Virus record (IMG/VR): IMGVR_UViG_3300049793_000366
Coordinates: 372,001 to 436,000 of that record
Direction: 5' to 3' (one strand)
DNA length: 64,000 bases
Part shown: one piece after another, positions 16,117-61,350 of the stretch
Numbering within the stretch: the stretch's first letter is position 1
How the letters are laid out: each line of letters opens with the position of its first letter
Program-made: the position numbers and the translations under genes
The notes under the pieces: model-generated
What the model saw: only the letters and a program-made list of their open reading frames with translations
Told to the model about the DNA's origin: nothing
The model's database searches: none

Positions 16117-16179
16117 ATGACTATTAAAAGAATTAAATTAGCTGATGATTGCCTAACCTGTCTAACTGTGACGGATTAG
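16117..16179 (+). CDS. Asp leader peptide MTIKRIKLADDCLTCLTVTD
   Basis: Short ORF after AATATATA, tandem GAT GAT codons, directly before a terminator and aspS. Confidence 0.75.
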   Translation: MTIKRIKLADDCLTCLTVTD

Positions 16180-16236
16180 TAATCTATTGACTATATAATT
16201 CGAAACCCAGTTAGACACGTTCTAACTGGGTTTTTT
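16159..16236 (+). promoter_or_regulatory. Attenuator (antiterminator/terminator) of aspS
   Basis: Terminator aaacccagttaga/tctaactgggttt + T tract (16203-16236); leader tgtctaactg (16159-16168) is the exact complement of cagttagaca (16208-16217). Confidence 0.8.
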
Positions 16237-16278
16237 ATTTGCACTAAAAATTATAAACTAAAAACAAAAACAATTATT

Positions 16279-19524: not shown

Positions 19525-19607
19525 TTTGCAAATTGAAAACTTTCACCTTACATTTGTATAAAATTAATAAGAAAAATAAAAAGGGAGCGAAAGCTTTATA
19601 ATATATA
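19525..19607 (+). promoter_or_regulatory. Dual promoter cassette (host-type promoter plus AATATATA)
   Basis: TTTG 19525, TACATTTG 19549-19556, AATATATA 19600-19607; near-identical copy at 47332-47414. Confidence 0.75.
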
Positions 19608-19612
19608 ACAAC

Positions 19613-19690
19613 ATGAAAACATTAATAAACATACAAGTTCAACCCGATCCGCAAGTGTCGTCTGCTGGCTGTATGTTTCATATGAGTTGA
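19613..19690 (+). CDS. Gln/Val/Pro/Asp leader peptide MKTLINIQVQPDPQVSSAGCMFHMS
   Basis: Short ORF between promoter and terminator; core QVQPDPQV. Confidence 0.75.
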   Translation: MKTLINIQVQPDPQVSSAGCMFHMS

Positions 19691-19714
19691 AAATAACTAT
19701 TTCAAATAATATCG

Positions 19715-19749
19715 AAAACCCTCAGTTAGCAATGACTGAGGGTTTTTTT
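19715..19749 (+). terminator. Attenuator terminator before the Asp/Pro tRNA-proS operon
   Basis: aaaaccctcagt/actgagggtttt + T tract; leader tgctggctg can pair with cagttagca. Confidence 0.8.
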
Positions 19750-19759
19750 ATGCCTAAAC

Positions 19760-19832
19760 GGAGCCATGGTTGAATGGTTACAATGCCACCCTGTCACGGT
19801 GAGCGATGCCGGTTCGAATCCGGTTGGTTCCG
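19760..19832 (+). tRNA. tRNA-Asp(GUC)
   Basis: Cloverleaf GGAGCCA/TGGTTCC, loop CTGTCAC, G73. Confidence 0.92.
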
Positions 19833-19910
19833 CAAAGTATCATAATCCAATCAAGAGTGTGGAGGATGAAGAGACCAATGCTTCTGTGGTTCTTATGATA
19901 CTAAAAATAC

Positions 19911-19984
19911 GACTCTGTAGCTCAGTTGGTTAGAGTGCCTGTTTGTCAAGCAGGAGGTCGCCGGTTCGAACCCGGTCATTGTCG
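19911..19984 (+). tRNA. tRNA-Asp(GUC), atypical body with two acceptor mismatches
   Basis: GACTCTG/CATTGTC, anticodon arm CCTGT-TTGTCAA-GCAGG. Confidence 0.75.
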
Positions 19985-19989
19985 CAAAA

Positions 19990-20063
19990 GGATCGTTAGT
20001 AGAGTTGGTTACAATGTCGCCCTGTCACGGCGAAGGTCACGGGTTCGAGTCCCGTACGGTCCG
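19990..20063 (+). tRNA. tRNA-Asp(GUC)
   Basis: GGATCGT/ACGGTCC, TCGCC-CTGTCAC-GGCGA. Confidence 0.92.
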
Positions 20064-20068
20064 CAAAT

Positions 20069-20139
20069 GTTTCGGTAGTTTAACTGGCTAGAATGGCCCC
20101 ATTCGGGGGTTGGTAGAGGTTCGAATCCTCTCTGAAACG
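20069..20139 (+). tRNA. tRNA-like RNA with a 5-nt anticodon loop (ATTCG); identity unassigned
   Basis: Intact acceptor GTTTCGG/CTGAAAC and T arm AGAGG-TTCGAAT-CCTCT; anticodon arm GCCCC-ATTCG-GGGGT. Confidence 0.55.
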
Positions 20140-20142
20140 CAA

Positions 20143-20393
20143 GAAAGTAGATGAGGTCATAGTGAGAGTGTACACTACTGTTATCTGGATGATAGCACTT
20201 CTGTATTAAAAAGACTCCGCTCTGAGTGGTTAGGTACCGTGTAGTATCTTCGCGTGTTCTCTGCTCGACAAAAGCAATGCCCAGTTGAAAGACTGTAAAA
20301 AAGCTGAGTCAGTGTATAAAGGGGAACGGGATATTAAAAGGTGTTAAACCTAAACTAAGTGGCTACACCGCACGGCTCAGCTCTCTACACTTC
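20143..20393 (+). ncRNA. Unidentified structured RNA, about 250 nt, between tRNAs
   Basis: Terminal pairing GAAAGTAGATGAG/CTCTCTACACTTC; GCTGAGTC/GGCTCAGC; several local hairpins; no ORF. Confidence 0.55.
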
Positions 20394-20466
20394 GGGATAT
20401 AGCGTAGTCCGGTATCGCGCCTGCTTTGGGAGCAGGAGGTCGTCAGTTCGAATCTGGCTATCCCGA
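20393..20466 (+). tRNA. tRNA-Pro(UGG)
   Basis: CGGGATA/TATCCCG, CCTGC-TTTGGGA-GCAGG. Confidence 0.92.
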
Positions 20467-20516
20467 CTGGAGCTTAGTTGTCAGTAGACTCGCGTTGGAA
20501 AGAGGAATTGTCAAAA

Positions 20517-20590
20517 CGAGATATAGCGTAGCCCGGTATCGCGCTTGCTTTGGGAGCAAGAGGCCGCAGGTTCGAATCCTGCTATCTCGA
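20517..20590 (+). tRNA. tRNA-Pro(UGG)
   Basis: CGAGATA/TATCTCG, CTTGC-TTTGGGA-GCAAG. Confidence 0.92.
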
Positions 20591-20594
20591 CAAA

Positions 20595-20813
20595 ATGAAA
20601 GTAGTTTGTGTAAATAATGGAAAAGAAACTAGAAGCGTCAATAATGACGTTACGGTTAATGATGTGTATGATGTTATATATGAACACACATCAGATTATT
20701 ACTTAACTAATGATAATAAAAAGAGACTCATGTACCCCAAAGATATGTTTATTACTTTGGATGAATTTAAAAAAGAAATTAGAAATAAAAAATTATTAAA
20801 TATAGGGTTATGA
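20595..20813 (+). CDS. Small hypothetical protein (true start ATG 20595; the ORF-track start lies in tRNA-Pro)
   Basis: MKVVCVNN...RNKKLLNIGL. Confidence 0.55.
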   Translation: MKVVCVNNGKETRSVNNDVTVNDVYDVIYEHTSDYYLTNDNKKRLMYPKDMFITLDEFKKEIRNKKLLNIGL

Positions 20814-21916
20814 GATTATCAGAAACAAAAATTTATAATATGTCAAGAGTTGGGAAAGATATTCTCTCAACATCTGAGTTGCTTGAGAAAGCAGGCTACA
20901 TTAAACAAGTTCAATCAGGATTATTTGTTCAGATGAATTTAATGAAACGTGTAGTGAACAACATTGAACGAATTGTAAAAGAAGAACTTGAAAAAATAAG
21001 TTGCTTAGAGATTGGATTAAACCAATTACAGAGCGCAGAAATTTGGAAACAAACAGGAAGATACGAAACATACGGATCTGAAATGTTTAAGTTGAAAGAC
21101 CGTTCAGATAAAGAAATGGTATTCACTGGTACGAATGAAGAGCTTGTAACCTTAGTGGCTAAGAATTATGTGAAGTCATATAGAGATTTATCTTTTACAT
21201 TCTATCAGATAAATAATAAGTTCCGTGATGAGATTAGATGCAACACTGGATTGATTAGATGTAAAGAGTTCTCAATGATGGATGCGTATTCATTTCACGA
21301 ATCAAAAGAACACTTACAAGCTTACTATGATAAGATGAGAGAATGTTACGTTAGAATCTTTGACAGACTTGGTTTGAAATACAGAATAGAATCTACTGAC
21401 TCAGGTGAGATTGGTGGTTCAGTATCAGAAGAGTTTGTAGTAACAACAAGTGATGGTGAAATAGAAGTTGGTCACATCTTCCAATTAGATACAAAGTATT
21501 CATCTAAGATGGAAGCAAGATTTGATGATAGAGAAGGTAAGAGTCAAGACATTGTTATGGGTTGTTACGGAATAGGTATCACTCGATTAGCACAAGTGTT
21601 AGCTGATGTTGGTAGAAGTGGTAACAACTTTAACTTTAGTGATGAAGTATCTGCTTATAAGTATGGTGTTGTAATCGCGAATGTTAATGACGAGAAACAA
21701 AAAGAAATTGGAGAAAAGATATACAAAAATTTGGTAGCTCAAGGATTATCCGTATATTTGGATGACCGAAACATAAGAATAGGTGAAAAGCTAAATGAAA
21801 TAGATGCTCTCGGTATTGCGAATAAAATATTAGTAGGTAAAAACATTGAAGAAAATATTTACGAAAAGAAAAAACTTTCCAGTGAGAATTGGATAAAAGA
21901 AGAAATAACATTATAA
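20810..21916 (+). CDS. proS: Prolyl-tRNA synthetase lacking the INS editing domain
   Basis: FRDEIR..GLIRCKEF.MMDAYSF; GEIGGSVSEEF joins IEVGHIFQL almost directly; MGCYGIGITR; C-terminal anticodon-binding domain. Confidence 0.92.
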   Translation: MRLSETKIYNMSRVGKDILSTSELLEKAGYIKQVQSGLFVQMNLMKRVVNNIERIVKEELEKISCLEIGLNQLQSAEIWKQTGRYETYGSEMFKLKDRSDKEMVFTGTNEELVTLVAKNYVKSYRDLSFTFYQINNKFRDEIRCNTGLIRCKEFSMMDAYSFHESKEHLQAYYDKMRECYVRIFDRLGLKYRIESTDSGEIGGSVSEEFVVTTSDGEIEVGHIFQLDTKYSSKMEARFDDREGKSQDIVMGCYGIGITRLAQVLADVGRSGNNFNFSDEVSAYKYGVVIANVNDEKQKEIGEKIYKNLVAQGLSVYLDDRNIRIGEKLNEIDALGIANKILVGKNIEENIYEKKKLSSENWIKEEITL

Positions 21917-21927
21917 TATATACAGCT

Positions 21928-21999
21928 ATGAACAATTTAGTACAACAAGTCCAGCAACAACAAATCAATCTGATGATTGACTGGACTCGTATTGGCTAA
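21928..21999 (+). CDS. Gln leader peptide MNNLVQQVQQQQINLMIDWTRIG
   Basis: Six Gln codons (5 CAA, 1 CAG) ahead of a terminator, four tRNA-Gln genes and glnS. Confidence 0.88.
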   Translation: MNNLVQQVQQQQINLMIDWTRIG

Positions 22000-22022
22000 A
22001 ATGTAATTAGTTCCAAATTTCG

Positions 22023-22057
22023 AAAACCCGTTAATCTGTGTGATTAACGGGTTTTTT
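22023..22057 (+). terminator. Attenuator terminator of the Gln operon
   Basis: aaaacccgttaatc/gattaacgggtttt + T tract; leader gattgac pairs with gttaatc. Confidence 0.85.
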
Positions 22058-22070
22058 GTTTGCCTAAAAT

Positions 22071-22151
22071 TGTCTGGTGGTGAAATGGCAGCCACATCCG
22101 CCTTTGAAGCGGATGCCGAAAGGCGTGTAGGTTCGACCCCTACCCAGACAG
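22071..22151 (+). tRNA. tRNA-Gln(UUG) with a long variable arm (type II body)
   Basis: TGTCTGG/CCAGACA, G73, TCCGC-CTTTGAA-GCGGA, variable arm GCC-GAAA-GGC. Confidence 0.8.
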
Positions 22152-22157
22152 CAACAT

Positions 22158-22230
22158 TGCGGAATCGTCTAACGGTTAGGATAACACCCTCTGAAGGTGT
22201 CTGGTGTGGGTTCGAATCCTACTTCCGCAA
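22158..22230 (+). tRNA. tRNA-Gln(CUG)
   Basis: TGCGGAA/TTCCGCA, ACACC-CTCTGAA-GGTGT. Confidence 0.88.
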
Positions 22231-22235
22231 CAAAT

Positions 22236-22309
22236 TGTTCTATGGTGTAACTGGTTAACACGTCCGACTTTGACTCGGAAGACTCTAGGTTCGAATCCTA
22301 GTAGAACAG
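22236..22309 (+). tRNA. tRNA-Gln(UUG)
   Basis: TGTTCTA/TAGAACA, TCCGA-CTTTGAC-TCGGA. Confidence 0.9.
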
Positions 22310-22318
22310 CTAAAATAT

Positions 22319-22389
22319 TCCTCTTTGGTCTAATGGTATGACGTTGGGTTTTGGTCCCAAAGGTGGTGGTTCGATTCCATCAAGAGGGA
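22319..22389 (+). tRNA. tRNA-Gln(UUG)
   Basis: TCCTCTT/AAGAGGG, TTGGG-TTTTGGT-CCCAA. Confidence 0.88.
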
Positions 22390-22420
22390 CAACAAATAGT
22401 AATAATTAAATACAAACAAT

Positions 22421-24040
22421 ATGAATTTCATTGAAGACAAAATAACAGAAAGGGGAATAATTGAAAGTTTTAAACTTCGTTTTCCACCAGAAAATAATGG
22501 CTTTTTACATATCGGTCATGCGAAATCTATATGCCTTAACTTTGGTTTAGCTGAAAAATATAACAGACCATGTAATTTAAGATTCGATGATACTAATCCA
22601 TCAAATGAATCAAATGAATTCACAGAGGCTATTAAGAGAGACATAGCATGGTTGGGTTATAGACCAGCTAATATTCATCACACATCAGACTACTTCGCAT
22701 TCCTATATGATTGTGCTAAGACATTAATCAGAAAAGGATTAGCATACGTTGATGATTCAACATCAGAAGAGATTGCGGCACTTAAAGGTACAACAACTTT
22801 AGCTGGTAGACCATCGCCTTATTACTCAAGAACAATCGAAGAGAATCTTGATTTGTTCGAGAGAATGAAGAACGGTGAATTCAATGAAGGTTCTAAAATA
22901 TTAAGAGCTAAGATTGACATGGCTTCTCCTAATATGATTTTGAGAGATCCTGTTTTATATCGTATCATCAACAAGACACACCACCACGTTGGTGATGCTT
23001 GGAAGATTTATCCAATGTATGACTTCGCTCACCCATTGTCTGACTTCATTGAAGGTATCACTGATTCACTTTGCACTTTAGAGTTCGAAGTACACAGACC
23101 ATTATATATGTGGGTACTTGAGAATTGTGATTTGAATGGTACATTACCAGAAGAAACAGAGTTCGCTCGTTTGAACATTGACTACACAGTTATGTCAAAG
23201 AGAAAGCTTAAGAGATTAGTTGAAGAGGGATTTGTTTCTGGTTGGGATGATCCAAGACTTCCAACAATTTCAGGTTTGAGAAGAAGAGGATATACACCAG
23301 CATCTATTAAAGATTTCTGTGATAGAATTGGTGTTACTCGTAAAGAGTCTGTTGTATCACACTTGTTACTTGAAGAGTGTTTAAGAAATGATTTAAACAA
23401 AGTAGCTAATCGTGTGATGGGTATAATGGATCCTGTTAAGTTAGTTATTACCAATTGGGATAACGGTACTGAAATGGTTGAGATTGAAAACAACCCAGAA
23501 GATGAAAGTGCTGGTAAGAGAATGGTTCCATTCAGTGGTGAAATATACATTGAACGTGAAGACTTCAGAGAAGAAGCTGATAACAAGTTTTTCCGATTGA
23601 AGCCAGGTTGTGAAGTAAGATTGAAGGGTGCTTGTGTAATCATGGCTAATGAAATTATCAAAGATTCAAATGGTAACATCATTGAAATCAGATGTACTTA
23701 TGACCCTAACAGTCGGTCAGGTATGACACTTGATAGAAAAGTTAAGGGTACTATTCACTGGGTATCAGTTGAACACGCTATTAAAGGAGAAGTTAAAGAG
23801 TACAGTAACTTATTCAATGTGGCTAATCCTGATGAGTTAGAAGACTTCGTAGAAGGATTGAACAAAGAGTCATTGATAGTTAATACGAATGCTTACTTTG
23901 AACCAGAAGCTTTGAATTGTTCAATCGATAAGCCAGTTCAAATGGTAAGAAAAGGTTACTATGTGATGGATAAAGATTCAACAACTAATTGCTTGATTTT
24001 CAATAAAACAGTTAATTTAAAAGAAGACCGTAATAAATGA
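22421..24040 (+). CDS. glnS: Glutaminyl-tRNA synthetase
   Basis: RFPPENNGFLHIGHAK, RFDDTNP, VMSKRKL, VKGTIHWVS. Confidence 0.95.
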   Translation: MNFIEDKITERGIIESFKLRFPPENNGFLHIGHAKSICLNFGLAEKYNRPCNLRFDDTNPSNESNEFTEAIKRDIAWLGYRPANIHHTSDYFAFLYDCAKTLIRKGLAYVDDSTSEEIAALKGTTTLAGRPSPYYSRTIEENLDLFERMKNGEFNEGSKILRAKIDMASPNMILRDPVLYRIINKTHHHVGDAWKIYPMYDFAHPLSDFIEGITDSLCTLEFEVHRPLYMWVLENCDLNGTLPEETEFARLNIDYTVMSKRKLKRLVEEGFVSGWDDPRLPTISGLRRRGYTPASIKDFCDRIGVTRKESVVSHLLLEECLRNDLNKVANRVMGIMDPVKLVITNWDNGTEMVEIENNPEDESAGKRMVPFSGEIYIEREDFREEADNKFFRLKPGCEVRLKGACVIMANEIIKDSNGNIIEIRCTYDPNSRSGMTLDRKVKGTIHWVSVEHAIKGEVKEYSNLFNVANPDELEDFVEGLNKESLIVNTNAYFEPEALNCSIDKPVQMVRKGYYVMDKDSTTNCLIFNKTVNLKEDRNK

Positions 24041-24543
24041 GTAATATATTAGATAAAATGTTTGATATGAATTTATCAGACTGTTTAGCAGCGTTAGTTA
24101 TCATAATAACATTCCTTACATTTATTATTAAAAAAACAAGGATAGGTTTTTTAAATTTTTGTTTATTTCTTTATAGAAAGGTTAAGTCTGTAATAGTTTT
24201 TATTCGTAGAAGTATAATATTATTTAGACTTCATAGGCTATTATCAAATTTGGATATTAATAGTGAATTTATAATTGATAAGGTTAAAATTAAAAAACAA
24301 ACACTCACAATATATAATGGTAAAAACAACATTGATATACATATTTCTAATAGTGACTTAGAAATGTTTTCTAAATATAAATTAAGTAAGTGGAAAAAAT
24401 CACTTCCACTTAGTATTTCACTATATATAGTAGATGGTATATTATTTAGAAATGAAGATGTATCTAAATTTACCAGAGAACATAGGCTATCTAAATATTT
24501 ACATGATTATATAAATGGAATAAAAACACCAAGTATTAATTAG
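24037..24543 (+). CDS. Hypothetical protein with N-terminal hydrophobic segment
   Basis: ATGA overlap with glnS. Confidence 0.5.
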   Translation: MSNILDKMFDMNLSDCLAALVIIITFLTFIIKKTRIGFLNFCLFLYRKVKSVIVFIRRSIILFRLHRLLSNLDINSEFIIDKVKIKKQTLTIYNGKNNIDIHISNSDLEMFSKYKLSKWKKSLPLSISLYIVDGILFRNEDVSKFTREHRLSKYLHDYINGIKTPSIN

Positions 24544-24544
24544 A

Positions 24545-24601
24545 ATGAAACACATTAACTCAAATAACGTAGTCGTAGTCAACAGGAATCCCGTCTGTTA
24601 G
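24545..24601 (+). CDS. Val leader peptide MKHINSNNVVVVNRNPVC
   Basis: Four consecutive Val codons (GTA GTC GTA GTC) ahead of a terminator and valS. Confidence 0.88.
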   Translation: MKHINSNNVVVVNRNPVC

Positions 24602-24623
24602 GCTACGCTATATCTATTATACT

Positions 24624-24655
24624 AACCCATCAGACAATCTCTGATGGGTTTTTTT
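24624..24655 (+). terminator. Attenuator terminator of valS
   Basis: aacccatcag/ctgatgggtt + T tract; leader gtctg pairs with cagac. Confidence 0.82.
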
Positions 24656-24694
24656 ATACCAAAAAATTACTAAAAAATTAAAACTAAAAATATT

Positions 24695-26224
24695 ATGAAA
24701 ACGAAATACACACCCGAAATTGAAAATGAAATCAACCAAGAATGGTTAGAAAATAAAACATACAAATCAACACCTGATGAGAGAGAAGCATTCACTATCA
24801 TCATGCCACCACCAAACATCACTGGTATACTTCACCTTGGACACATCTTGAATAACACAATACAAGATATTTTCATTAGAAGAAAGAAACAACTTGGTTA
24901 CAACACTTGTTGGATTCCTGGTATCGACCATGCTTCAATCGCAACAGAAGCTAAAATCATTCACTGGTTGAAAGAACAGAACATCGAGAAGAATGATCTG
25001 ACTAAAGAACAATTTCTTGAGTATGCTTGGCAATGGAAAGATAAATATGGTAACATAATCATCGACCAACTTAAACGATGTGGCTTTGCTTGTGATTGGG
25101 ATAGACTTACATTCACAATGGATAAACATCACTCTGATAGAATCTATGAAATGTATGACAGACTTAAAGCTGGCAACATCATATATCGCGGTACTAAAAC
25201 AATGGCTTATGACCCATTAGCTAAAACATACTTATCAGACTCGGAAACGTTTGAGAAGAATGGTAAACTATTCTCTGAGAGAACAGGCGCTAAGATTGAA
25301 ATGAAAGACACTGAGCAGATATTTATCGATATGAATAAGATTGCTCAACCCGCACTTGATAGTATCGGAGAACGCATTAAAATGATTCCTGATACAGCAT
25401 TCCCATCTTATAAGAATTGGTTTGATAACTTACAAGATTGGTGTATCTCAAGACAGTTAACATGGGGTCACTCTATACCAGATGATGAAGGAACTTTTGA
25501 TACTTGGTTCTCTTCTTGGTTATGTGCTATCACAGCATTTAAATCACAAGAAGAAATAGATTACTATATGCCATCAGACTTCATCATTACTGGTCAAGAC
25601 ATCGCTTTCTTTTGGATTGCTAAGATGATAATGGCGAATGATTACTGGGATAAATCTATACCGTTTCATAACATCTACTTCACTGGTATTATGAGAGATA
25701 AAGACGGTAAGAAGTTTGCGAAGCAGTTTAATAATTCACCAGACATTATGAATTTGATGGAAGAGCATGGCGCTGACTCATTGCGATTCTCAACTATCAT
25801 TAACCATCACGCTGGTATGGATTCTAAATGGACTATGGATCAATTGTTACAGGGTAAAAGATTCTGTAATAAGATTTGGAATATCAACAAGCTAATGTCT
25901 TCGTGGCAACCATCTGATATAGAAATGTCAGACAAACAAAGAGAATCATTGAATACTTGGAAGATGCAGTTTGCTTCTGCTAAGAATAGCTACAAGCAAC
26001 TATTTGATGATGAGCTTAGATTCTCAGAAGCTTTGATATTAACCTACAATCTTATTTGGGAAGACTTTTCATCTGGGTTACTTGAAGCCATAAAGCCTGA
26101 ACAGGGCATTTGGCCAAATTTAAACCGTGAGCTGTATGATTGTTTAATGAGTGATTTCAGAGAATTGATGCTAATGTTGGAGCCATTTATGCCATTCATA
26201 AGCAATTATATGTTGAATAAGTAA
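24695..26224 (+). CDS. valS: Valyl-tRNA synthetase, 509 aa, CP1 editing domain deleted
   Basis: PPPNITGILHLGH, PGIDHASIAT, DWCISRQLTWGH, FDTWFSS; KMSKS equivalent is KFAKQ. Confidence 0.9.
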   Translation: MKTKYTPEIENEINQEWLENKTYKSTPDEREAFTIIMPPPNITGILHLGHILNNTIQDIFIRRKKQLGYNTCWIPGIDHASIATEAKIIHWLKEQNIEKNDLTKEQFLEYAWQWKDKYGNIIIDQLKRCGFACDWDRLTFTMDKHHSDRIYEMYDRLKAGNIIYRGTKTMAYDPLAKTYLSDSETFEKNGKLFSERTGAKIEMKDTEQIFIDMNKIAQPALDSIGERIKMIPDTAFPSYKNWFDNLQDWCISRQLTWGHSIPDDEGTFDTWFSSWLCAITAFKSQEEIDYYMPSDFIITGQDIAFFWIAKMIMANDYWDKSIPFHNIYFTGIMRDKDGKKFAKQFNNSPDIMNLMEEHGADSLRFSTIINHHAGMDSKWTMDQLLQGKRFCNKIWNINKLMSSWQPSDIEMSDKQRESLNTWKMQFASAKNSYKQLFDDELRFSEALILTYNLIWEDFSSGLLEAIKPEQGIWPNLNRELYDCLMSDFRELMLMLEPFMPFISNYMLNK

Positions 26225-26234
26225 TATATAGAGT

Positions 26235-35256: not shown

Positions 35257-35361
35257 ATGTTAGTTATCAGTTCACATAAACATTTTAGTAAATCTAATAA
35301 GTGGTTTAGCCACTCTGGTTCGTGCTATGGCGTTTGTGTAAACTCTACTACAATGATGTAA
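35257..35361 (+). CDS. His/Lys/Phe/Trp/Ser leader peptide MLVISSHKHFSKSNKWFSHSGSCYGVCVNSTTMM
   Basis: Core HKHFSKSNKWFSHS ahead of a terminator and the His/Lys/Trp/Phe/Ser tRNA array. Confidence 0.8.
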   Translation: MLVISSHKHFSKSNKWFSHSGSCYGVCVNSTTMM

Positions 35362-35383
35362 AGAATTTAAATCACAATACTCG

Positions 35384-35416
35384 AAGCTCGAACCGTAAAA
35401 AGTTCGAGCTTTTTTT
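35384..35416 (+). terminator. Attenuator terminator
   Basis: aagctcgaac/gttcgagctt + T tract; leader tggttcgtgct pairs with agctcgaaccg. Confidence 0.82.
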
Positions 35417-35441
35417 GTGCCTAAATTTTAAAAATTTATAT

Positions 35442-35697: not shown

Positions 35698-35771
35698 TGA
35701 GGGGTAGCTCAGTGGTAAGAGCGCCGGGACGGAAAACCCGGAGGTCGTTGGTTCGAATCTAACCCCCTCTA
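35698..35771 (+). tRNA. Initiator-like tRNA body with an 8-nt anticodon loop ACGGAAAA
   Basis: U1-U72 mismatch, GAGGGG/CCCCTC, CCGGG/CCCGG stem, AGGTC variable loop. Confidence 0.6.
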
Positions 35772-40150: not shown

Positions 40151-40219
40151 ATGAAAACAACAATGACAATAACAATTTCTCGCTCGCGTTCATCGCGTTC
40201 ACTACCTCTGGTGGTCTGA
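40151..40219 (+). CDS. Ser/Arg leader peptide MKTTMTITISRSRSSRSLPLVV
   Basis: SRSRSSRS core; all Ser codons TCN, all Arg codons CGY. Confidence 0.85.
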   Translation: MKTTMTITISRSRSSRSLPLVV

Positions 40220-40246
40220 GATTGTATTGTCTAATAAATAATACTT

Positions 40247-40278
40247 AACCCTTGGACTTCACTGTTCAAGGGTTTTTT
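40247..40278 (+). terminator. Attenuator terminator
   Basis: aacccttgga/ttcaagggtt + T tract; leader-end ggtctgag pairs with cttggact. Confidence 0.8.
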
Positions 40279-40292
40279 GTTATGTGTAAATT

Positions 40293-43055: not shown

Positions 43056-43124
43056 ATGAAAACATTAAACATCAATACTCATTTTCACTTTCACTTCGAA
43101 AACCTCGAACTGGGAGTCCATTGA
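43056..43124 (+). CDS. His/Phe leader peptide MKTLNINTHFHFHFENLELGVH
   Basis: HFHFHF directly before a terminator, hisS and pheS. Confidence 0.9.
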   Translation: MKTLNINTHFHFHFENLELGVH

Positions 43125-43151
43125 TATTGATATAACTATATAATCATTATG

Positions 43152-43179
43152 AAGCCCAGACGAGAATCTGGGCTTTTTT
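43152..43179 (+). terminator. Attenuator terminator of hisS-pheS
   Basis: aagcccaga/tctgggctt + T tract; leader ctcgaactggg pairs with cccagacgag. Confidence 0.85.
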
Positions 43180-43216
43180 ATTTGCAAAAATTTAAACAAA
43201 ATAAAACAAAGAAATC

Positions 43217-43852
43217 ATGGAAATTAAATTAGAATCAACTTACAAAGGAACAAGAATACTATTCGCTGAAACTGCGAAAACAAAAAGAACAATCATTAAC
43301 AAGATGATTGAAATACTTGAATCATATGGCTATCAAGAAATGATGATACCAATTATTCAAAAGCAAGATACTTTTAAATCTAAAGTAGGTGCTGAAAACC
43401 AAAAGATGATGTACACCTTCAAAGATATGGGTGACAGAGATTTGTGTTTAGCACCAGAGTATACCGCGGTTATTCAACAACTTGCTAAAGAAAAGTTTAA
43501 ATTCAACAAAGATGTTAAGCTATTTTATGTAGCTGAGTGTTTCAGAGGTGAGAACACACAAGCTGGTCGATTTAGACAGTTCACTCAATTTGGTGTTGAG
43601 GTGATAAACCCAAGAGAAGACTACTCTGATGAAATGTTAGAGATAGCAAAAAAGTTAATTGAAATATGTACTGATAACTATGAAGTGAATACTGACGCGA
43701 CCAGAGGCTTAGACTACTATAAAGGTGGTAAGGGCTTCGAGATTGGTTGCCCAGAGTTGGGATCCTCTAAGCAAGTATGTGGTGGTGGTTCTTATGAAGG
43801 TGGTATCGGATTCGCTATCGGTGTTGACCGAATACTAATACTTAAAAAATAA
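43217..43852 (+). CDS. hisS: Histidyl-tRNA synthetase, catalytic domain only (211 aa)
   Basis: LCLAPEYT, FRGENTQAGRFRQFTQFGVE, RGLDYY, GGGSY, GFAIGVDR, then stop. Confidence 0.88.
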   Translation: MEIKLESTYKGTRILFAETAKTKRTIINKMIEILESYGYQEMMIPIIQKQDTFKSKVGAENQKMMYTFKDMGDRDLCLAPEYTAVIQQLAKEKFKFNKDVKLFYVAECFRGENTQAGRFRQFTQFGVEVINPREDYSDEMLEIAKKLIEICTDNYEVNTDATRGLDYYKGGKGFEIGCPELGSSKQVCGGGSYEGGIGFAIGVDRILILKK

Positions 43853-43860
43853 AACAGTTT

Positions 43861-44961
43861 ATGAAATATTTAAATAAAGAAGAAATAGAAAAAACTCTTT
43901 CTCTTAAAGACTTAACAGAAGATACACATCACGCCATCGGTATGATGGTAAGTGAAATAAAAAATGCTTTAGAATCCAAATATGGATTAGAAGCTAATGA
44001 AATAAGAACATCACCTATTGTTGATGTTAAAGATAACTATGATAGATTGTATTATCCACAAGACACGATTACCAAATCAAGTAGGTATACTCGTTGGATT
44101 GATGATAATACAATTCTACGTACACAAATGACTGCTTGTATACCAAATGCTTTGAGTAAGTTAAATACAAATGATTCTCTCATGTTGTGTCCTGGTATGG
44201 TATATCGTCGTGATGTTGTAGATAAAACTCACGTTGGTGAACCGCATCAAATGGATGTATGGCGAGTAACAAAAGACAAAGTGTATAACAGGCAGGATCT
44301 ACTTGAATTGGTAGAAACTATTATAAATGTTGTATTACCTGGTGTTCAGTGGCGCTATAATGAAACTTCGCACTACTACACCAAAGATGGTATTGAAGTA
44401 GAAGTTTATGTAAATGATAACTGGTTAGAGATTCTTGAGTGTGGTTTAGCTCTACCTGAGCTTTTAAGCGACTCTGGGTTAAATCCTGATACTTGGTCAG
44501 GCTTAGCGTTAGGAATTGGCTTAGATAGAGCTGTAATGCTTAGAAAGGGTATAGCTGATATTCGGATATTAAGAAGTGATAATCCGAAAATATCTAAGCA
44601 AATGTCCACATTATTAAATTATATTTCCGTATCTTCACAACCACAAATAAAAAGAGACTTATCGATTGCGGTTGATAGTGATGTTAATAATGAAGATTTG
44701 GGTGATATTATACGAAATTTGATGGGTGATGAAGTAAAAATCATCGAACAAGTGGTTATTATATCTGAAACCAAATATGAAGATTTATTAGAACACGTAA
44801 GAGAAAGACTTGGTATGACTGACAATATGAAAAATATACTACTTAGAGTTATAATATGCCCTCTCGATAAAGCTATGACTAAGACTGAAGCTAATGAGAT
44901 TTATACTCATTTATATAGTAAATTACATCAGGGAAATATTGGGTACACAATTAATATATAG
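43861..44961 (+). CDS. pheS: Monomeric phenylalanyl-tRNA synthetase (alpha catalytic domain fused to anticodon-binding FDX-ACB domain)
   Basis: LRTQMT, YRRDVVDKTH...HQMD, WLEILECG, ALGIGLDRAVML..GIADIR; C-terminal RDLSIAV. Confidence 0.88.
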   Translation: MKYLNKEEIEKTLSLKDLTEDTHHAIGMMVSEIKNALESKYGLEANEIRTSPIVDVKDNYDRLYYPQDTITKSSRYTRWIDDNTILRTQMTACIPNALSKLNTNDSLMLCPGMVYRRDVVDKTHVGEPHQMDVWRVTKDKVYNRQDLLELVETIINVVLPGVQWRYNETSHYYTKDGIEVEVYVNDNWLEILECGLALPELLSDSGLNPDTWSGLALGIGLDRAVMLRKGIADIRILRSDNPKISKQMSTLLNYISVSSQPQIKRDLSIAVDSDVNNEDLGDIIRNLMGDEVKIIEQVVIISETKYEDLLEHVRERLGMTDNMKNILLRVIICPLDKAMTKTEANEIYTHLYSKLHQGNIGYTINI

Positions 44962-47436: not shown

Positions 47437-47532
47437 ATGAACACTTTAATCTACATAGGGTATATAGCGGAAGGCGGTTATGAAGCGGGGAGCTTCGTGA
47501 ATGGCTTGGTTTTACCTATGCGTAAAGTGTGA
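47437..47532 (+). CDS. Tyr/Ile/Gly/Ala/Glu leader peptide MNTLIYIGYIAEGGYEAGSFVNGLVLPMRKV
   Basis: Core YIGYIAEGGYEAG with two ATA codons. Confidence 0.85.
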   Translation: MNTLIYIGYIAEGGYEAGSFVNGLVLPMRKV

Positions 47533-47558
47533 TGATATAAACATACTTAACAAATTCG

Positions 47559-47590
47559 AAACCCAGTCATTCAAATGACTGGGTTTTTTT
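47559..47590 (+). terminator. Attenuator terminator
   Basis: aaacccagtcatt/aatgactgggttt + T tract; leader tgaatggcttggttt (47498-47512) pairs with aaacccagtcattca. Confidence 0.85.
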
Positions 47591-47600
47591 ATGCCTTAAT

Positions 47601-60518: not shown

Positions 60519-61272
60519 TTGGGCAGTATAGTGTCCTACACAAATCTTCGGGTTTGTGTGAAAATAAAGCTGGTAACAGTCTATAAAGCAAACGTAGAGT
60601 TTGCGACTTCTTCACGGGAGTTTAACTATAAAATACTTAGTATGTCTTTGATGGACGAATGTTCAATGAGATATCATCATCCAACTATGGTGATTGCGTC
60701 AGAAATGATTACAAGAAAGGTAGGGTATTATGTGCGAAATGTCCAAACATTAGTGCGTGTGCTATCTGATTAAGTTATACAACGTATAGTTTATATTCGC
60801 AAGGGTATTTATTATACATGGGCGACTGAAGCAGACGTGAGCTGGAAACTCACAGAAGGGCGTTTAGTATTTTGTTCTCAAAAGGAACGAAGCTATACCA
60901 CACAGGCGTCCTTCATACAAATAGTTGTTATCTAACATGATTTTGAAATATCAAAAAAGCAAAATCTGTGTGGCGCTGGAGTCGAAAGGTCTCTAATTCC
61001 ATCCGTTGCGAAACGAAGATGGAGTCTAATATCCCGCAAGGATATGGATTTAGCTAAGAAAAATCTAGTGGGCGCAACCCTTAGTCAGTTCGCAAGACTG
61101 AATAGACAGAGTAGCAGTTGAGTAGACAAACTGGTCAAACAGTTCTAGCGATACGAGTGATTACCGTAAGGAATCGAGACTGACAGAATACTTATCGCAA
61201 GGTGAGTGGATAATGAGAGAACCAATAATGCTCAGAAAGATTTGTCGACCAAAGCTATAATCTCAAGCTTTT
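60519..61272 (+). ncRNA. Large ornate ncRNA, GOLLD-like (about 750 nt)
   Basis: Five CGCAA-loop hairpins, UUCG/GCGA/GAAA loops, long-range helices (GAAGGGCG/CGTCCTTC, CACACAG/CTGTGTG); tRNA-flanked phage context; family call is from memory. Confidence 0.6.
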
Positions 61273-61276
61273 TTAC

Positions 61277-61350
61277 GGCGTGTTCGTCTATCGGAAGGAC
61301 GCTACCCCATTTCAGGGTAGAAACGTATGGTTCGAATCCTGCACACGCTA
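61277..61350 (+). tRNA. Glu-like tRNA-like RNA, near copy of 59987-60060
   Basis: Identical from GGAAGGAC through the T arm; acceptor GGCGTGT/ACACGCT co-varies. Confidence 0.6.

Follow-up and report, generated by a model that had tools for sequence, protein, structure and literature searches.

We analyzed a 64,000-nt stretch of DNA (positions 372,001 to 436,000 of IMG/VR virus record IMGVR_UViG_3300049793_000366; hereafter "the window"), in which phage tRNA and aminoacyl-tRNA synthetase genes are lined up behind three short leader open reading frames (ORFs), each followed by an intrinsic terminator (Table 1). The first unit (leader 1 and terminator T1) precedes tRNA-Asp genes, tRNA-Pro genes, and proS; the second (Gln leader and T2) precedes tRNA-Gln genes and glnS; and the third (Val leader and T3) precedes valS. 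All features between 19525 and 26224 lie on the + strand, and the gene spacings range from -4 to +30 nt. Here, we examine whether these units are ribosome-mediated attenuators and whether the first one also governs the genes behind the other two, as an earlier note made from the letters of the window had proposed.

The virus record is the genome of a huge phage (507,910 bp, 33% G+C). Among named genomes, its closest relatives are LR745206.1 (634,780 bp) and LR756502.1 (642,428 bp), both from uncultured phages, so that this 508-kb phage, itself uncultivated, is akin to the "Mahaphage" genomes of 634 to 642 kb. Bacteroidetes hosts have been predicted for phage genomes above 634 kb, and a single huge-phage genome is reported to carry as many as 67 tRNAs and 15 synthetases (Al-Shayeb et al. 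2020, PMC7162821). The host of the window phage is probably also a member of the Bacteroidetes. The sequencing runs listed as containing this DNA are all DNA runs, with no RNA run among them. The genome encodes a sigma-70-family protein (112839-113045 of the genome), and no match to the beta-prime subunit of RNA polymerase was found in it, which fits transcription by the host core polymerase and hence the use of intrinsic termination.

Table 1. Features of the three leader units and of further leader units (window coordinates unless stated otherwise; the promoter assignments are putative)
Feature	Position	Strand	Remarks
Bacteroidetes-type promoter, TTTG-N20-TAcaTTTG	19525..19556	+	exact consensus, upstream of leader 1
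TAATATATA motif	19599..19607	+	5 nt before leader 1 ATG
Leader ORF 1	19613..19690	+	25-aa peptide, control codons QVQPDPQV at codons 8-15
Region 1	19627..19639	+	pairs with region 2; overlaps codons N6-V9 (minimum free energy fold, duplex search)
Region 2	19663..19678	+	19663-19671 pairs with region 3 (antiterminator), 19666-19678 with region 1
Terminator T1	19716..19751	+	arms 19716-19726 and 19735-19745, then T run
tRNA-Asp(GUC) x3	19760..20064	+	tRNA calls; starts 19760, 19911, 19990
Aberrant tRNA	20069..20140	+	called Glu-UUC, A at position 33
tRNA-Pro(UGG) x2	20393..20591	+	tRNA calls; starts 20393, 20517
72-aa ORF	20595..20813	+	stop overlaps proS start; weak DUF6501 match
Mini ProRS (proS)	20810..21916	+	368 aa, without insertion/editing domain
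Host-type consensus inside proS	21730..21760	+	twelfth copy, ~170 nt upstream of Gln leader
TAATATATA motif	21914..21922	+	5 nt before Gln leader ATG
Gln leader ORF	21928..21999	+	23 codons, core QQVQQQQ, six Gln codons at positions 6-12
Terminator T2	22024..22060	+	intrinsic terminator
tRNA-Gln x4	22071..22390	+	UUG x3, CUG x1
GlnRS (glnS)	22421..24040	+	family match
168-aa ORF	24037..24543	+	overlaps glnS stop, ends 1 nt before Val leader
Val leader ORF	24545..24601	+	18 codons, core VVVV at 9-12, TAG stop
Terminator T3	24624..24657	+	intrinsic terminator
Mini ValRS (valS)	24695..26224	+	509 aa; match skips CP1 editing domain and C-terminal part
TAATATATA motif	26222..26230	+	before next gene (26235); putative new start point after valS
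Leader unit	16117-16240		DD, precedes non-discriminating-type AspRS
Leader unit	35257-35420		HKHFSKSNKWF; precedes tRNA-His/Lys/Trp/Phe; further on LysRS, tRNA-Ser GCU
Leader unit	40151-40280		SRSRSSRS; precedes Ser/Arg tRNAs and SerRS
Leader unit	43056-43185		HFHFHF; precedes HisRS fragment and PheS-related ligase
Leader unit	47437-47595		IYIGYIAEGGYEAG; precedes tRNA-Glu, Tyr, Gly, Ile(UAU), Ala
Leader unit	genome 319889		22-codon list: Leu, Thr, Val, Asn, Met, Ile, Cys, Arg; precedes 17-tRNA block
Leader unit	genome 51619		IIII; counterpart in relative W01 precedes 735-aa ORF

Leader 1 has the layout of a four-region attenuator

The control codons of leader 1 include Asp and Pro. As the earlier note had read it, and as our gene calls bear out, these match the three tRNA-Asp genes, the two tRNA-Pro genes, and proS that follow immediately. 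Orthologues of this leader are present in 12 relatives.

In the minimum free energy (MFE) fold of the full leader 1 transcript (-37.1 kcal/mol, z -4.9), AAACATACA (19627) pairs with TGTATGTTT (19670), which is the helix aaacataca/tgtatgttt drawn in the earlier note. When the transcript is cut before the 3′ arm of T1, the MFE fold pairs TGCTGGCTG (19663) with CAGTTAGCA (19723), and the antiterminator tgctggctg/cagttagca of the same note is recovered. Since the segment 19666-19671 is common to both helices, the two are mutually exclusive. Region 3 (CAGTTAGCA, 19723-19731) covers the 5′ arm and the loop of T1; the antiterminator helix also excludes T1, and the layout is the classical four-region one. 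The antiterminator duplex is stable relative to dinucleotide shuffles (z -3.4 to -4.5), and the AGTTAG core of region 3 is unchanged in 10 of the 12 relatives regardless of differences in the stem, with a 1-nt change in the other two (L157 and L159).

To relate this anatomy to the position of a ribosome, we used a simulation in which the ribosome footprint is masked at each A-site codon and the nascent RNA is folded. For leader 1, the antitermination-competent window ends at codon 15, which is the last residue of QVQPDPQV, and codons Q8 to V15 all lie inside it.

The Gln and Val leaders are probable switches of the same kind

The attenuators that the earlier note placed at 21928 and 24545 were both found again, each as a leader ORF with its own terminator (21928-21999 with T2 at 22024-22060, and 24545-24601 with T3 at 24624-24657). 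In the simulation, the T2 arm is sequestered only with the ribosome at codons 5/6 to 13, i.e., the Gln run, and the T3 arm only with the ribosome at codons 9 to 14 (VVVVNR). The 1:2 helix is strong in both leaders (z -3.5 for Gln, z -3.1 for Val). The antiterminator complementarity is weak in the Gln leader (z -0.7 to -1.5) and reaches z -2.0 to -2.2 in the Val leader. All three terminators are seen in MFE folds, and the stems of T1 to T3 measure 11 to 15 bp and are followed by a T run of 6 to 7. Altogether, the units have the parts expected of an attenuator: a short ORF between a putative promoter and the genes, cognate control codons, an intrinsic terminator downstream of the leader, an antiterminator that competes with this terminator, and a stop codon from which a terminating ribosome can mask the 5′ strand of the antiterminator, with the evidence for these last two features being less strong in the case of the Gln leader.

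The stop codon of the Val leader is TAG, and a tRNA with the anticodon CUA is encoded in the genome (genome 121630-121702). Suppression of this TAG would add 7 codons, up to a TAA on the 5′ arm of T3 (24599-24625), and, judged from this position, should abolish termination at T3. We rejected a genome-wide recoding of TAG, as might be supposed from the tRNA-CUA, given that 36 long ORFs end in TAG and have no long in-frame extensions.

Leader codons match the downstream tRNAs throughout the clade

We scanned the whole genome that holds the window and ~400 kb from five relatives, and found a leader and terminator unit before nearly every tRNA block and synthetase gene. For 38 leaders from six related genomes, the mean fraction of control-window codons that are cognate to the downstream tRNAs is 0.546. 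When the pairings of leaders and blocks were permuted 5000 times, this fraction was 0.182 (standard deviation 0.029) and never exceeded 0.284, which excludes chance ORFs beside terminators as an explanation. The antiterminator complementarity has a mean z of -2.3 over 60 candidates and is near 0 for non-leader false positives.

The match extends to the choice of codon. The leader at 35257 uses AGT and AGC, matching the tRNA-Ser GCU that lies 3 kb downstream, and the leader at 40151 uses only TCN and CGY, with tRNA-Ser UGA/GGA and tRNA-Arg ACG/GCG downstream. Similarly, the leader at 47437 spells Ile as ATA, matching tRNA-Ile UAU.

Searches for known regulatory RNAs did not account for the leaders. 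No T-box was matched between 19400 and 24800, either at gathering level or at E values up to 5. No Rfam leader family gave a gathering-level match, with the best scores being 27.9 against a required 49 bits for His_leader and 21.9 against 55 bits for Phe_leader; the weak sub-threshold Rfam matches include PyrR-site and small RNA models. A broad AT-rich pattern scan of viral contigs proved unspecific and was set aside.

The genes behind the HFHFHF leader are of an unusual kind. They are a 211-aa HisRS-like fragment (43217-43852) of about half the normal length, with no canonical HisRS, and a PheS-related ligase of the SrmL family (43861-44961) instead of a canonical PheRS.

Two types of putative promoter precede leader 1

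The sequence TTTG-N20-TAcaTTTG is a promoter consensus known from Bacteroides and Flavobacterium. Its exact copy upstream of leader 1 is conserved at the same place before Pro/Asp leaders of relatives (as a near match in L010). On the + strand of the window, this host-type consensus occurs in 12 exact copies, 11 of which are intergenic and upstream of genes. The twelfth, at 21730 inside proS, may be a chance match, with ~0.8 matches per strand per window expected from base composition. The host-type consensus precedes leader 1, and no copy lies directly before the Gln or the Val leader. A scan for sigma-70-type promoters was uninformative (65 matches vs 64 expected).

The earlier note had missed a second motif, TAATATATA, which has 117 copies in the genome, compared with 23 to 49 for composition-matched 9-mers, and is orientation-specific. 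Of the 117 copies, 100 have an ORF of 60 aa or more starting within the next 40 nt. The usual spacings are 4 to 5 nt (46 copies) or ~19 to 26 nt before the ATG, and leaderless mRNAs would result from the shorter one. Before leaders and tRNA-Met, a AAAGGGAG-like sequence is often found upstream of the motif. In three genomes, TAATATATA lies directly upstream of a tRNA-Met gene, with no ORF, which argues that it is a transcription signal and not a translation signal. From this distribution, TAATATATA is probably a promoter for a phage-encoded sigma factor acting on the host core polymerase.

Upstream of the Val leader, we found neither the host-type consensus nor TAATATATA in a sensible position, the latter even with one mismatch allowed. 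The earlier note had seen no promoter directly before the Val leader, and our motif scan for both types agrees; valS would therefore depend on read-through of T2. A single unit without internal promoters is in line with what precedes the Val leader and is put in doubt by what precedes the Gln leader, namely, TAATATATA at 21914 and the host-type consensus at 21730, both putative promoters.

Glutamine codons accompany a downstream Gln unit

Leader 1 also contains Gln and Val codons, whose cognate genes lie behind the other two attenuators. For glutamine, the relatives show a consistent pattern. Q is present in the control windows of all 13 distinct Pro/Asp leaders (window, L001-L004, L007, L008, L010, L156, L157, L159, L165, and L177), with 1 to 5 codons each and at least 3 in 12 of them, and behind every one of these leaders comes a Gln unit (Gln leader, tRNA-Gln genes, and glnS). 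The ~30 other non-Gln leaders have no Q in their control windows. The remaining non-Gln leaders with Q all belong to one relative, G002: its Leu/Arg/Met/Glu/Ile leader and, with one Q at the edge, two further leaders.

The gene order of G002 is informative in this respect. Its tRNA-Pro and tRNA-Asp genes belong to a large mixed block with no Gln genes behind it, and the leader of this block lists Pro and Asp, with its sole Q at codon 3, upstream of them. The relocated Gln unit follows the Leu/Arg/Met/Glu/Ile block, whose leader has two Q codons. We also considered the Val leader of G002 (...QVVQPD...) as an orthologue of leader 1 and rejected it, because its CAG-CCG-GAC is the antiterminator strand and its flanks and terminator are unrelated.

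In five relatives (W01, W02, G001, G003, and L004), the distance from the last tRNA to the start of the Gln leader is ~30 nt, and neither promoter motif occurs between the Pro/Asp tRNAs and the Gln leader. Therefore, polymerase would reach the Gln attenuator of these relatives only through T1. In addition, the Q codons turn over: Q8 and Q10 of the window align with non-Gln codons of the relatives, and the D-Q-D of the relatives is lost in the window. That the Q codons shift position and yet are kept in number favors their maintenance over mere inheritance.

Such nested listing is not limited to glutamine. Where two leaders are adjacent and no host-type promoter separates them, 72% of the private amino acids of the next unit appear in the upstream leader (n = 12), compared with 35% when a host-type promoter lies between (n = 11) and 21% in non-adjacent pairs (n = 152), figures that are descriptive, the pairs being orthologous across genomes and not independent tests. 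Specifically, the His/Lys/Trp/Phe leaders carry Ser ahead of the Ser/Arg unit, and the Glu/Tyr leaders carry Ile, Gly, and Ala ahead of the Ile/Gly/Ala unit. The comparison of leaders makes a hierarchical reading plausible for Gln, and to this extent, the master leader of the earlier note is supported by the 13 Pro/Asp leaders and by G002.

Bacterial-looking contigs (L166-L221) encode a GlnRS that is ~55% identical to the phage GlnRS, and in many of these ~55 bacterial glnS loci, a tRNA-Cys gene lies on the opposite strand. A Gln-rich upstream leader was found in none of the ~55, which suggests that the Gln switch is a feature of the phage lineage and was not simply copied along with a host gene.

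Valine codons of leader 1 do not point to valS

The same comparison gives a different answer for valine. All Pro/Asp leaders of the relatives contain Val codons, 1 to 4 of them and typically as PQVV[VI]DQ. The arrangement of valS behind glnS is found in the window only, and in no relative with a Pro/Asp leader; in L001, for instance, the large ORF after glnS is NrdJ and not a synthetase. V9 (GTT) is an invariant alignment column within region 1. With the A before it, this codon gives AGTT, a sequence that resembles the terminator arm (C)AGTTAG and pairs with region 2. V15 lies at the edge of the simulated window, 8 nt upstream of the antiterminator strand. The Val codons of leader 1 thus appear to be inherited from relatives without valS, and a role as a Val sensor for valS, which the earlier note had assigned to them, is not supported.

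We also tried, and rejected, the Val codons of the Gln leader (GTA and GTC) as a listing of valS. Both are inside its 1:2 helix, in which GTCCAG pairs with CTGGAC, and the interrupting position is taken by Ile, Tyr, or Phe in the Gln leaders of relatives, with no matching genes downstream.

Proposed mechanism and its alternatives

Taken together, we consider it likely that three ribosome-mediated attenuators in series gate the phage tRNAs and the cut-down synthetases, with the nesting of the Gln unit being partial and Val not being listed. The functional steps, namely, translation of the leaders, the response to stalling, termination, the promoter assignments, and the transcript extents, are predicted from sequence. 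By analogy with trp, his, and pheST, a shortage of a charged tRNA would stall the translating ribosome at the corresponding codons of the leader. Region 2 would then be free to pair with the 5′ arm of the terminator, and RNA polymerase would read through. If the ribosome instead finished the leader, it would cover region 2, and the terminator would form. In this scheme, leader 1 would sense Pro, Asp, and most probably Gln, leader 2 would sense Gln, and leader 3 would sense Val.

A shortage of Gln would then have to open T1 before polymerase reaches T2, resulting in an OR at T1 followed by an AND at T2. The Gln codons in leader 1 would make sense because the Gln unit lies downstream on the same transcript and, in most relatives, has no promoter motif to itself. 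In the window, transcripts that start at the host-type promoter would keep the Gln unit nested, and activity of the phage-type promoter would make it autonomous. Given the TAATATATA acquired before the Gln leader, nesting in the window is best described as partial, and the Gln unit is probably not wholly dependent on leader 1. Expression of valS would need read-through of T2 and then of T3. The OR-then-AND hierarchy of the earlier note is therefore supported comparatively for Gln, is not supported for Val, and was incomplete in that the second promoter type had been overlooked.

Several observations weigh against this reading. For leader 1 itself, the 1:2 helix is no stronger than in shuffles (z -0.16), the antiterminator forms even without a ribosome in the simple simulation used here, there is a single Asp codon, and Q8 overlaps region 1 and is hence partly structural. 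For the hierarchy, the TAATATATA at 21914 and the consensus at 21730 imply that Gln expression may be largely independent of leader 1. Moreover, the Pro/Asp leader of L156 keeps four Gln codons although promoter motifs precede its Gln leader, and the Q codons could be ancestral relics. In L010 and L157, a tRNA-Gln gene lies inside the Pro/Asp block, such that a simple Pro/Asp/Gln block may be the origin of the Q codons. The listing rule is not universal: in L150-L152, glnS follows a large multi-tRNA block whose leader has no Gln codon. In these three related metagenomic contigs, the glnS start is 13 nt downstream of the last tRNA in the block (L150 6906-7001, L151 3925-4020, and L152 2372-2467), with no Gln leader and no tRNA-Gln at glnS. 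Finally, the Pro/Asp leaders are orthologous, and only about two independent events are behind the Q association.

These observations bear directly on the alternative that the three attenuators are merely neighbors, each with its own start (TAATATATA or, for valS, an unrecognized promoter), and that leader 1 has its Gln and Val codons as spacers or relics that play no part in regulation. This explanation gains from the TAATATATA copies before both leader 1 and the Gln leader, from the host-type consensus at 21730, from the promoter motifs before the Gln leaders of L156 and L007, and from the ancestral Pro/Asp/Gln block suggested by L010 and L157. It fits poorly with the five relatives in which ~30 nt without a promoter motif separate the last tRNA from the Gln leader, with Q codons that change position while their number is kept, and with G002, where Q codons occur in the leader upstream of the relocated Gln unit. 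It would also have to account for nested listing in other leader pairs and for the lack of anything promoter-like before the Val leader. On this evidence, we regard independence of the three units as rather unlikely.

The full model of the earlier note, in which one promoter serves all 6.5 kb, leader 1 senses Pro, Asp, Gln, and Val, and the downstream units are wholly dependent on it, is distinctly less credible. The tight packing of the genes, the missing promoter motif before the Val leader, the position of all codons from Q8 to V15 within the simulated antitermination window, and the two Val codons of the Gln leader, GTA and GTC, which the Val leader also uses, are what it would predict. 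However, Val codons occur in all 13 Pro/Asp leaders and valS is downstream only in the window; V9 is invariant and part of region 1; the Val codons of the Gln leader are in its 1:2 helix, with Ile, Tyr, or Phe in relatives that lack matching genes; and TAATATATA precedes the Gln leader. That the short ORFs are not translated sensors at all, and that the hairpins simply terminate transcription, mark processing sites, or belong to a T-box-type switch that binds a protein or tRNA, has the weak Rfam matches in its favor and is highly improbable in view of the permutation result (0.546 vs a maximum of 0.284), the detailed match of codons and anticodons, the control codons that fill exactly the simulated stall window, the lack of any T-box or other riboswitch match, and the location of the terminators between promoter and genes and not at operon ends.

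Extending the preferred reading of attenuators in series to the whole clade, we lean towards a demand-driven regulon for translation supply, in which leaders ahead of nearly all tRNA arrays and mini-synthetase genes list the downstream tRNAs and synthetases codon by codon, units are wired hierarchically, and upstream leaders list the nested units.

Other features of the tRNA and synthetase blocks

Within the Pro/Asp block, the earlier note had omitted the aberrant tRNA at 20069-20140 and the 72-aa ORF at 20595-20813. An aberrant tRNA is present in each of the three Pro/Asp blocks examined (window, L001 4770-4843, and L003 5244-5314), with CA at positions 32 and 33 and an anticodon loop of 6, 7, or 8 nt; the counterparts in relatives have 6- or 8-nt loops. 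We considered these odd tRNAs as tRNA-Val and rejected this on account of their aberrant anticodon loops. The 252 nt between the aberrant tRNA of the window and its tRNA-Pro genes (20141-20392) contain no called tRNA and have no Rfam match at E values up to 5; they hold a degenerate tRNA-Pro-like piece and a long hairpin (GCTGAG...CTCAGC). The 168-aa ORF between glnS and the Val leader (24037-24543) has no family match.

The phage synthetases are minimized: ProRS has 368 aa, ValRS 509 or 450 aa, and LeuRS 422 aa (window 20810-21916 and 24695-26224, L001 2237-3505, and L006 896-2248). ValRS and LeuRS are without the CP1 editing domain. From this domain content, the minimized synthetases may charge tRNA without proofreading.

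Elsewhere in the window, ARAGORN calls a tRNA with a 4-base anticodon at 35698, and a full-length GOLLD RNA (232 bits) lies at 60855-61269. A tRNA-like element at 61277-61350, called by Rfam and not by ARAGORN, comes right after the GOLLD RNA.

Significance and comparison with known systems

The transcription of tRNA genes is usually seen as globally regulated, by growth rate and the stringent response, and not per amino acid. If this clade-wide reading is true, these phages would provide the first case of tRNA gene transcription under codon-specific ribosome stalling, as well as the first amino-acid-responsive attenuators in a virus. The virus appears to meter its own tRNAs and charging enzymes by the reports of stalled ribosomes, which would explain how huge phages manage large sets of translation genes. 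The leaders would constitute a sequence-readable map of the codons that each tRNA block serves, and they would offer compact, composable amino-acid-specific switches for Bacteroidetes-type hosts, which to our knowledge lack T-boxes. They would also be a natural system for studying the number of control codons that a multivalent leader requires for each amino acid. The literature that we searched contained no description of such leader attenuators over phage tRNAs or synthetases, and the words attenuation and leader are absent from the paper of Al-Shayeb et al. 2020 (PMC7162821). Leader-peptide attenuators over phage tRNA arrays and minimal synthetases are thus apparently an undescribed regulatory layer.

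Ribosome-mediated attenuation is established for the trp, his, leu, thr, ilvGMEDA, and pheA operons of Proteobacteria, among which multivalent leaders are known for thr (Thr and Ile) and ilv (Ile, Leu, and Val). The phage units resemble these biosynthetic operons in having a short cognate leader ORF, exclusive 1:2, 2:3, and 3:4 helices, a terminator before the genes, and several amino acids in one leader. Unlike them, they are phage-borne, regulate tRNAs and synthetases instead of biosynthetic enzymes, list up to ~10 amino acids, nest sub-attenuators in one unit, and fall outside the Rfam leader families.

Closer precedents are leader-peptide attenuators over a synthetase gene of the same amino acid, i.e., E. 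coli pheST with its pheM leader and the His leader upstream of hisS paralogues in bacilli (PMC2965389). These are cellular, respond to one amino acid, and lack tRNA genes downstream of the terminator, whereas in the phage units the tRNA arrays come first and the synthetases are minimized, without editing domains. As with the huge phages of the same clade (Al-Shayeb et al. 2020, PMC7162821), the repertoire here comprises both tRNAs and synthetases, and the regulatory layer is what our analysis adds. Finally, T-box riboswitches of Firmicutes also raise synthetase expression when cognate charging is low and are also known in series, but a T-box binds uncharged tRNA directly, with no translation involved, whereas the sensor in the phage would be a translated ORF.

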